Assembly: GCF_011386835.1 (NCBI RefSeq)
Contig: NC_088806.1
Coordinates: forward strand, 30,814,001-30,878,000
DNA: 64,000 bases
Reading direction: 5' to 3'
Source of the DNA: Chrysemys picta bellii
Lineage: Eukaryota
In this document: positions 12,501 to 15,500 of the stretch, piece after piece
Numbering within the stretch: position 1 is the stretch's first letter
Layout of the letters: every line of letters starts with the position of its first letter
Program-made: the position numbers and the translations under genes
Notes under the pieces: generated by a model
What the model was told of the DNA's origin: nothing
Databases searched by the model: none
Seen by the model: only the letters and a program-made list of their open reading frames with translations

Positions 12501-15500
12501 AAAGAAAGTGTCCGGGTAGGGTCTCTGCTGGGCATCAAGCAACCCCTAAAAATACTTAGGAGGGAGGAATGGGAACATGGAAACAAATTTAAGTACTTGA
12601 TTGGGTTTATTTCTCCCCCCCCCCCCCCCCCCCAAGCCCCTTCACTGATTCTTCAAGTCTTATCATGTGTTCTCAAGCAAGCCCTTAAATGATCCTTTGA
12701 TTAAACTGTTCGGGATTCCCACTGTCCCTGTTCTGTGTCTCCTACAGCTCCAACCACATTGCCAACACTTACTGCTTAAACAGGTGATAGGAATAACTGC
12801 GGAACTTTGTCAGTGAGCATGAAAACGGACACTCCCAAATGGCCGGGTGCTAATGACCTTGACAAGGCCGTGCCTCAGCTGTGGTCTCACACCATAGAAT
12901 CATGGGGTAGAAGGGACCCCCAGGGTCATCTAGTCTAATATGCAGGATTTGTTGTGTCTAAACCATTGAAGGCAGATGGCTCCAGCCTCCTTTTGAAAAC
13001 CTCCAGTCAAGGAGCTTCCAAAACCGCCCTAGGCAGTTTGTTCCGTTGTCCTACAGTTCTTACAGTTGGGAAGTTTTTCCTGAGATTCAGTCTAAATCTG
13101 TTATGCTGTAGTTCGAACGCACTGAATTAGGGGACAGCTAAACACCGAGGAAAACTTTCAGATAAATTCAGAATGCTGCTCTGACCAATAGAAACTGTGG
13201 CCTAGAGTGTATAGTCAGTTTTGGGGGTTCTTGTGGCCTTCATGGCTGGCTGTATACCCAGATCCCATCTCTGTGTTTGTCTGTGGCGTTCGGTTGCTCT
13301 ATTGTAAATACATGCTTTCATGTAAATATTCTAACCAAATACAAGGAGGCTGTTCTAATACACACTTATGATCTTATTTGCAATGAAATCTCTTCCTAAC
13401 ATAGTATCAGAGGGGTAGCTGTGTTAGTCTGAATCTGTAAAAAGCAACAGAGGGTCCTGTGGCACCTTTGAGACTAACAGAAGTATTGGGAGCATAAGCT
13501 TTCATGGGTAAGAACCTCACTTCTTCAGGTTCTTACCCACGAAAGCTTATGCTCCCAATACTTCTGTTAGTCTCAAAGGTGCCACAGGACCCTCTGTTGC
13601 TTTTTCCTAACATAGGGCTTTTGAAGATGTTTGGTCAGCCAGGGGCTTTGTTTATGTGGGGCTGAAGGTCATTGCCTTGTGACGTTCTGAAGAAGCTTAG
13701 CTTCTCTTTGTAATGAAGTCTCAGATTTGGTCTGTGATGTTATTGTGGCAATAACTTGGCCGTTTGTTAGACTATCTGTTCCTCACATAAATAGCTGCAC
13801 TACTTTCTATAGCAATGCAGTTGTACAATGATCTGGGCCCTGCCCGGCCATTCTATGGTGGACATGCAATCACTCAGTGAAATAAATGAGCATTGTAAAA
13901 GATGAACTTGATTAGATAGGAAACACTAATTATGGGCATGTCCAGATGGGTCAGGGCTTAGGAATTAAAAACAAAATGTAAGCAAGACAACTCAGGCAGA
14001 CCTGAGGATCTGGCTGATATCTAACCTCAATAAAACGCCCTCTAGTACCTCATCGGCTTCTCCCCAGGAGGTTTTTAGGCTTGTTTCTCTTTTCTTCCTA
14101 AATAACGTTCTATAGTAAAGCTATTTGGTCCTGGACTTGACTCCTCTTGTGTCGTGTGTATGGGATTCACTTGAATGGATGTCTGAGATTGCATTTGAAA
14201 GTTTGTACATCACTCTTTCCTTTGGTTTGTGAGCTGTACTCCAGGGGCACGGTCCTCTACAGAAATGCAGTGACCCCAGGTTACCCCTCAGCACGGACTA
14301 TGGATAGCTACGCCTCAGCTTGCCCTGTGCCAGTATCTGGAGTGCCAGTATGTGCACAGGCCCCGTATGGCAGCGGGGGATGGGGCTAGGCCTGTACGTA
14401 AGCAATAATTCCTTTGCCTCCCCCGTACGGTCCAGTCCAGCAAAACTGTAGCTCTGGTAGGGTGCGGAATCAGCCAGCTGGTGCTTGATGTTCGGGCCCT
14501 TCACCAAGGCAGCTATGGCACGCCGCATGCTGGGGGTGAGGGAGACTCTCGGACCAGTGGGGTTGATAATATCCCCCTTCCCCCCCCTTAGGTTTTTTTT
14601 TTTTTTTCCTTCATTCTTTCTCTTAGGACCAGTTCAATGGTCACATCCAGCTGGTGAGGAATGGAGCAAAGCTGAGCAGCCTGCCCCAGATCCCAACCCC
14701 CACCCTGCCCCCCACCCCCGTCCGAGGTGAGTGTCGCTCCCCAGATCCCAACCCCCACCCTGCCCCCACCCCCGTCCGAGGTGAGTGTCGCTCCCCAGAT
14801 CCCAACCCCCACCCTGCCCCCACCCCTGTCAGAGGTGAGTGTCGCTCCCCAGATCCCAACCCCCACCCTGCCCCCACCCCCGTCAGAGGTGAGTGTCGCT
14901 CCCCAGATCCTGGCCCAGACGCTCCGTGTGAAGCGTTCCTGGTCACTCGTGCACGGGGCTTTTCTAAGGCTAGCAGACCCCAGCAGACAGCTGCCTCTGG
15001 GGGCAGGCTGGTCACAGACCCTGGCTTGGGTAGTGCTGTGGCATGTGCATGTGTTCATGGTATTCACCAGCTGCCTGCTCAGAAGTGACAGTGCACCCCT
15101 GGTGATAGCTTGGCAGCTGCACTCATGTGACTGGGGATCTGTGAGGTGTGGGTTCCTTCCCACCCCCACGTTTTCATGTCTGTAGTCTGGGTGGAAGGAG
15201 TTCCTGGCTGGCTTCCAACAGGCCTGTTCTAACCGGTATTCTCTTCTCTCTCTCAGACAGAGTTCATGATGCCGGCATTTCAGCCCAATCCATCCCTTAC
15301 CCCCAGGCTCCCGTTCCCCATTGGGCCGGTCCCAGTTCCCATGCTCATGCCCAGTGCTGATCCTCGGGCGCTCTCCTTCCCGCTCCTGAACCCTGTCATC
15401 TCCAGGCCTAATCAGCCCTCACCCCCTCTGCCTGCTTCCCAAGGGAGGAACAGCCCTGTATTGGCATCTCTTGTCAGCACCCACGGCCCTCACATGACAT

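Follow-up and report, generated by a model that had tools for sequence, protein, structure and literature searches.

Which 5' splice site does a gene use when the end of a coding exon, together with its donor, has been multiplied within a tandem repeat? The question is raised by a 64,000-nucleotide stretch of Chrysemys picta bellii DNA (contig NC_088806.1; the whole stretch is referred to below as the window), in which a 54-bp repeat straddles the boundary between exon 10 and intron 10 of the RNF214 gene. The original prediction held that the repeat provides RNF214 with four in-frame alternative donors, the choice among which could add zero to three copies of a PxxP-rich module, so that the length of the repeat allele would set an isoform ladder in an E3 ligase.

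The RNF214 gene was identified on the + strand from open reading frames and exon-sized protein matches around the array, and was matched exon by exon by tblastn with bird, mammal and Malaclemys RNF214 sequences. Bird and mammal-like fragments align in exon-sized segments from about position 11165 to 18798. The match to the X3 isoform of Malaclemys terrapin RNF214 begins at the start codon (3451) and extends to the stop codon near 18800; inside the limits of the exons, those encoding the RING among them, identity is 95-100%. The phase at the end of exon 9 (12515, with GTAGGG following) is 0, and exon 11 proper is identical to its counterpart in Malaclemys X3. When a full-length marsupial protein was used as query, restricted to the region of the exon junction, the matches were NCBI-named RNF214 proteins of mammals, birds and turtles. 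The window also contains BACE1-like and CEP164-like reading frames, putative neighbors of RNF214. The features discussed here are collected in Table 1.

Table 1. Coordinates of the repeat array and of the surrounding RNF214 features, numbered from the first nucleotide of the window.
Feature	Positions	Strand	Remarks
RNF214 exon 10	14627-14726	+	100 nt as assembled; acceptor TTAG then GACC; orthologues imply 99 nt ending PPPPSE
54-bp tandem array	14684-14910	+	4.2 copies, 97% matches, no indels, score 424 (Tandem Repeats Finder)
Exonic copy of 10-nt microhomology CCCCAGATCC	14684-14693	+	other turtles have CCACAGATCC
C6 run in copy 1	14708-14713	+	C5 in copies 2-4; CCACC in other turtles
Donor 1, GAG then GTGAGTGTCGCT	14727-14738	+	position of ancestral exon 10 donor
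Donor 2	14781-14792	+	sequence identical to donor 1; motif search
Donor 3	14835-14846	+	identical; preceding unit with C>T change (PPPLSE in conserved frame)
Donor 4	14889-14900	+	identical; intron-proximal copy
Intronic copy of CCCCAGATCC	14901-14910	+	intron +13 to +22; partial fifth unit
RNF214 exon 11	15257-15634	+	378 nt, phase 0 to phase 0; ends ...RFPQCNK
Second AG at exon 11 acceptor (CAGACAG then AG)	15259-15260	+	4 nt downstream; read from sequence

The 33-residue piece encoded by exon 10 matches PF24525 at its C-terminal end with E = 0.0012, its 18.7 bits falling short of the 27-bit cut-off, and precomputed annotation assigns PF24525 and PF24905 to RNF214 orthologues. The insertion point comes immediately behind this match to PF24525, a TTC3/DZIP3-like helical domain. 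It also falls between two regions of known importance, the coiled coil, which RNF214 needs for self-association, and the C-terminal RING, needed for ligase activity (PMC11167002).

The predicted fourfold repetition of a 54-bp unit was confirmed by Tandem Repeats Finder, and a separate repeat search returned the same 54-nt spacing. Each unit comprises about 42 exonic nucleotides and the first 12 nucleotides of the intron; this composition, as originally proposed, is exact in copies 2 to 4, whereas copy 1 has 43 exonic nucleotides owing to its C6 run. After a partial fifth unit consisting of CCCCAGATCC alone, the sequence continues as unique intron. The repeat carries a complete splice-site consensus inside its unit, and one of its copies, that of donor 1, stands where a conserved exon has its authentic splice site. 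A motif search found the 15-mer GAGGTGAGTGTCGCT four times in the array, with the G of GT at 14727, 14781, 14835 and 14889, which bears out the claim of identical GAG/GTGAGT donors. This is a strong donor sequence, and its four copies are identical from -42 to +12. Successive donors lie 54 nt, or 18 codons, apart, and the DNA between them proved open on translation: a retained unit is free of stop codons in the conserved as well as in the assembled frame. The peptide was expected to be the same in every copy, but only the openness of the frame is general; of the units translated in the conserved frame, the one separating donors 2 and 3 contains PPPLSE and the others PPPPSE. Use of donors 1 to 4 would give exons of 100, 154, 208 and 262 nt and introns of 368 to 530 nt. 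The copies differ from one another by two substitutions and one indel, the substitutions separating copies 1 and 2 from copies 3 and 4, which retain the ancestral A at -4. These differences, which fit stepwise growth, argue for an array that has some age and is probably real in the animal rather than a stutter of the assembly.

Two further kinds of splice-site-like sequence occur in this region. A possible cryptic acceptor, CTCCCCAG followed by AT, ends the intronic part of each unit (14739-14744, 14793-14798, 14847-14852 and 14901-14906); introns running from donor 1 to the AGs of these motifs would measure 18, 72, 126 and 180 nt, each divisible by three. Inside exon 10 there is a consensus-like donor, CTG/GTGAGG (14654-14659), spanning the codons L-V-R; it is conserved in all five aligned turtles and evidently goes unused in the annotated proteins. 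The donor of exon 11 itself (AAG then GTGAGTGTCCCT, 15635-15646) has the same base as GTGAGTGTCGCT at 11 of 12 intron positions.

Comparison with other species identifies the original state of the junction. The orthologues that were read comprised bird, mammal-like and primate fragments, a full-length marsupial protein, one slightly diverged version, and 33 annotated turtle RNF214 proteins from about 18 species. Across birds, mammals and turtles, these sequences carry PQIPTP(T/A)LPPPPSE, then T(E/D)F, once each. The RNF214 loci fetched from the genomes of four other turtles, Platysternon, Chelydra, Gopherus evgoodei and Chelonia mydas, likewise contain a single unit. In alignments, the window has a 163-nt insertion relative to all four, that is, three units and one base, and donor 1 aligns with the sole donor of the four turtles and with the protein junction PPPPSE/TEF. 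Alignment confirmed the first donor, at the level of sequence, as the ancestral and authentic end of this conserved RNF214 exon. The copy number in other turtles, which the original prediction proposed as a check, provided no support: one unit was present in four of four genomes, and the 33 turtle proteins contain no extra one (neither VSVAPQ nor a second PQIPTPT was found in them). Among the turtles compared, Platysternon is the nearest in DNA (92.1% over positions 12001-19000) and Malaclemys the nearest in protein; Malaclemys isoforms X3 and X4 have one unit each. The array thus appears to be lineage-specific, and its three extra units were probably added after the split from Platysternon. 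In database searches, exact look-ups of the exon 11 reading frame, of the + strand reading frame through the array and of a minus-strand reading frame of 193 residues returned no record, and protein word searches that took exon 11 or a junction-spanning bird fragment as query matched fragments of birds, mammals and others, turtle transcript contigs not being among them. In its source record, the orthologue of Platysternon megacephalum (GCA_003942145.1) carries the name 'kelch-like protein 40-like', which looks like a misannotation.

The ends of the array suggest how it may have arisen. The same 10 nt, CCCCAGATCC, stand at its two borders, once in the exon and once in the intron. Gopherus has CCCCAGATCC at the matching intron position and CCACAGATCC in the exon; in Platysternon, the exon has CCACAGATCC and the intron CCCCAGACCC. 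In the lineage studied here, a synonymous A>C change in the exon probably lengthened the microhomology from 7 to 10 nt. Two copies of CCCCAGATCC bracketing the unit would then have been a substrate for replication slippage or unequal exchange, and either process, acting between the two copies, would yield a duplication of exactly 54 bp. Minisatellites are common in this GC-rich window, with seven arrays in 64 kb.

Whether the four donors are in frame, as originally proposed, depends on a single base. When the copies are compared from their donors backward, copy 1 reads CTGCCCCCCACCCCC and copies 2 to 4 read CTGCCCCCACCCCC. Because of the extra C in copy 1, exon 10 measures 100 nt instead of 99. 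Read in frame from exon 9, the assembled exon does not finish as ...PPPPSE but with one carried base, and the peptides on which the original prediction was built are present only in the frame shifted by one, in which two stop codons occur upstream of the array. The 54-nt spacing and the open units therefore stand, but the proposed frame does not: all four donors end in phase 1 as assembled and exon 11 starts in phase 0, so that none of them is in frame with exon 11 on account of the extra C. Since the other 14 exons of the gene show no frame break relative to Malaclemys RNF214, and since the C run is located inside a repeat, the extra C is most likely an assembly error; we consider a homopolymer error within the repeat distinctly probable. 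If the extra C is such an error, the in-frame potential of the donors would be real.

On the evidence of the copies, the orthologues and the reading frame taken together, we lean toward explaining the array as a young, lineage-specific minisatellite that is tolerated in frame, with the intron-proximal donor dominant and the extra C an error. Tolerance would follow from the 18-codon period and the absence of stops in the conserved frame, since any of the donors would then give a translatable mRNA. The products would be the ancestral protein or proteins enlarged by one to three proline-rich units of 18 residues, and the additional units would lengthen the linker that joins the TTC3-like helical domain to the C-terminal part. 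Provided that the array is real, there is a somewhat better than even chance that the donor at 14889 dominates; this is predicted because duplicated identical strong sites favor the intron-proximal one (PMC3413131). Its dominance would result in a largely constitutive protein with 54 additional residues and minor shorter forms, rather than in an even or regulated ladder. Should the array also exist in Malaclemys, the single-unit isoforms X3 and X4 of that turtle would favor the first donor. Masking of particular donors by RNA structure was considered and rejected, the predicted fold of positions 14627-14960 being no more stable than that of shuffled sequence (z = -0.6).

The alternative closest to the original prediction is that all four donors are used appreciably, producing a 54-nt ladder of RNF214 forms with zero to three PxxP-rich units, a range set by the length of the repeat allele, and functional consequences for the E3 ligase. 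The identity of the donors from -42 to +12, their 18-codon spacing and a unit open in the conserved frame all speak for such a ladder; the exon and intron lengths that would result (100-262 and 368-530 nt) are all workable; and minor retention of one unit is documented for another repeat that includes a donor, that of ABCA7. Against it, the frame to exon 11 is broken for every donor as assembled, experiments with duplicated identical sites showed near-exclusive use of the proximal one, and no extra unit occurs in the annotated turtle isoforms. A potential for the ladder thus persists if the extra C is an error, but the assembled frame contradicts it and the duplicated-site experiments predict one dominant product; the full ladder appears unlikely. 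Only slightly less doubtful is the weaker proposition that the array is real, the C an error, and at least two of the four identical donors are used appreciably. If this were true, minisatellite copy number would set the in-frame repertoire of RNF214 isoforms (+18, +36 or +54 residues in a PxxP-rich linker), and the locus would stage, within a conserved gene of vertebrates, a natural four-way contest among 5' splice sites of identical sequence.

Much less probable is that the extra C is real, in which case the animal would carry a frameshifted RNF214 allele prone to nonsense-mediated decay, or one whose frame is restored at exon 11. The C is, after all, present in the assembled sequence, and CAGACAG followed by AG offers a second CAG acceptor. 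Use of the second AG, with a start at 15261, appears from the sequence to be the only nearby candidate for restoring the frame, and the restored version would read ...LPPTPVR-E-FMMPAF.... Other routes to frame rescue were rejected, namely the cryptic donor CTG/GTGAGG (14654) combined with a unit-internal CCCCAG acceptor, and the GT at 14720; each is weak or would remove residues that every orthologue retains. In the assembled frame neither of the substitutions between units changes an amino acid (CCC/CCT and CGA/AGA), whereas one replaces Pro by Leu in the conserved frame, a contrast that would favor a real C; two substitutions, however, are too few events and carry no statistical weight on the question of frame. 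Several further points argue against this alternative: from mammals to turtles, RNF214 has been conserved precisely where this junction lies, the first AG after a pyrimidine tract is the one normally used, and a single base gained by a C run inside a repeat is typical of consensus errors.

That the copy number is itself an artefact, the animal having one unit or in any case fewer than four, is equally improbable: although the array comes from a single assembly, exact look-ups of reading frames through it brought up no independent record, four other turtles have one unit and a frame-breaking homopolymer difference lies within it, the copies are non-identical, with (1,2)/(3,4) substitutions and an ancestral A at -4 in copies 3 and 4 that stutter would not give, and much longer minisatellites of the window were assembled without gaps.

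Some of these other minisatellites are also open to translation. A 42-bp minisatellite at 35622-36599 (23.3 copies, 92% match), probably within a BACE1 intron, is open in two + strand frames, in which reading frames of 413 and 320 residues are built of 14-residue units. A 40-bp minisatellite at 30501-31410 (22.4 copies, 79% match) contains long proline-rich reading frames on the minus strand; tblastn matches of these frames to the proline-rich part of RNF214 were judged spurious. A 39-bp repeat at 1502-1699 (5.1 copies, 99% match) and a 32/117-bp array at 186-523 are found in a region of 72% GC that precedes the RNF214 start codon (3451); both may be minisatellites close to the promoter.

The RNF214 array would be informative whichever donor prevails. 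If the extra donors are used, it would provide a clean natural case of choice by the spliceosome among identical 5' splice sites, and one in which a conserved protein gains coding modules from a minisatellite by way of donor choice rather than by exon duplication. If a single donor is used, it would show why duplications that span a splice junction persist, an in-frame, stop-free unit being harmless whichever site is chosen. The break in the frame inside the repeat, for its part, marks a spot where the assembly and the annotation derived from it need checking.

A known coding repeat of similar size is the 54-bp VNTR of human PER3, an in-frame unit of 18 residues present in 4-5 copies, wholly exonic and always translated. 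The RNF214 array likewise has a 54-bp in-frame unit in 4-5 copies, but translation of its extra units would depend on donor choice. As to position, it compares with the one well-studied natural VNTR known to contain a donor, in intron 18 of human ABCA7, also a tandem repeat that abuts a coding exon. There the canonical donor is formed by the first GT of the repeat, later units provide cryptic donors, and a minor isoform retaining exactly one 25-bp unit has been observed (De Roeck et al. 2018, PMC5954066). The ABCA7 unit is wholly intronic, however, and its retention is out of frame, whereas the RNF214 unit of 18 codons includes 42 exonic nucleotides and is open. Furthermore, ABCA7 has 12 to about 427 slightly varying units, with the later donors placed after repeat sequence that lacks the last bases of the exon; RNF214 has four candidate donors in identical context. 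The ABCA7 case would also run opposite to the dominance predicted for the donor at 14889, the canonical donor there being the one adjacent to the exon.

Duplicated junctions have been analyzed in two other settings. In human CBS, the c.844_845ins68 allele duplicates the junction between intron 7 and exon 8, and one of the two resulting sites is strongly preferred (PMC2630376). As in RNF214, duplication of a junction has placed identical splice sites close together, and the CBS allele is tolerated; but CBS has two copies of a 3' splice site and RNF214 four of a 5' splice site. In addition, splicing at the preferred CBS site eliminates the duplicate, so that the mRNA is normal again, whereas in RNF214 either outcome would be in frame. 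Work on engineered substrates with duplicated 5' splice sites (Eperon and Hertel laboratories) showed splicing almost exclusively at the intron-proximal one; the distal site was used when the proximal was weak and not when both were strong (Hodson et al. 2012, PMC3413131). These substrates, in which identical strong donors also compete on one pre-mRNA, are the best experimental model for the RNF214 array, although they are artificial, with two sites some 174-176 nt apart and assayed mostly in vitro, and RNF214 has four natural sites 54 nt apart under exon definition. Taken together, ABCA7, CBS and the engineered sites suggest that the RNF214 array would give one dominant product rather than an even ladder. 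Repeats that span a splice site are already known from ABCA7 and CBS, and the RNF214 array is not a new kind of system; what sets it apart is the inclusion of exon sequence in the unit, an open unit of 18 codons, and four identical donors.
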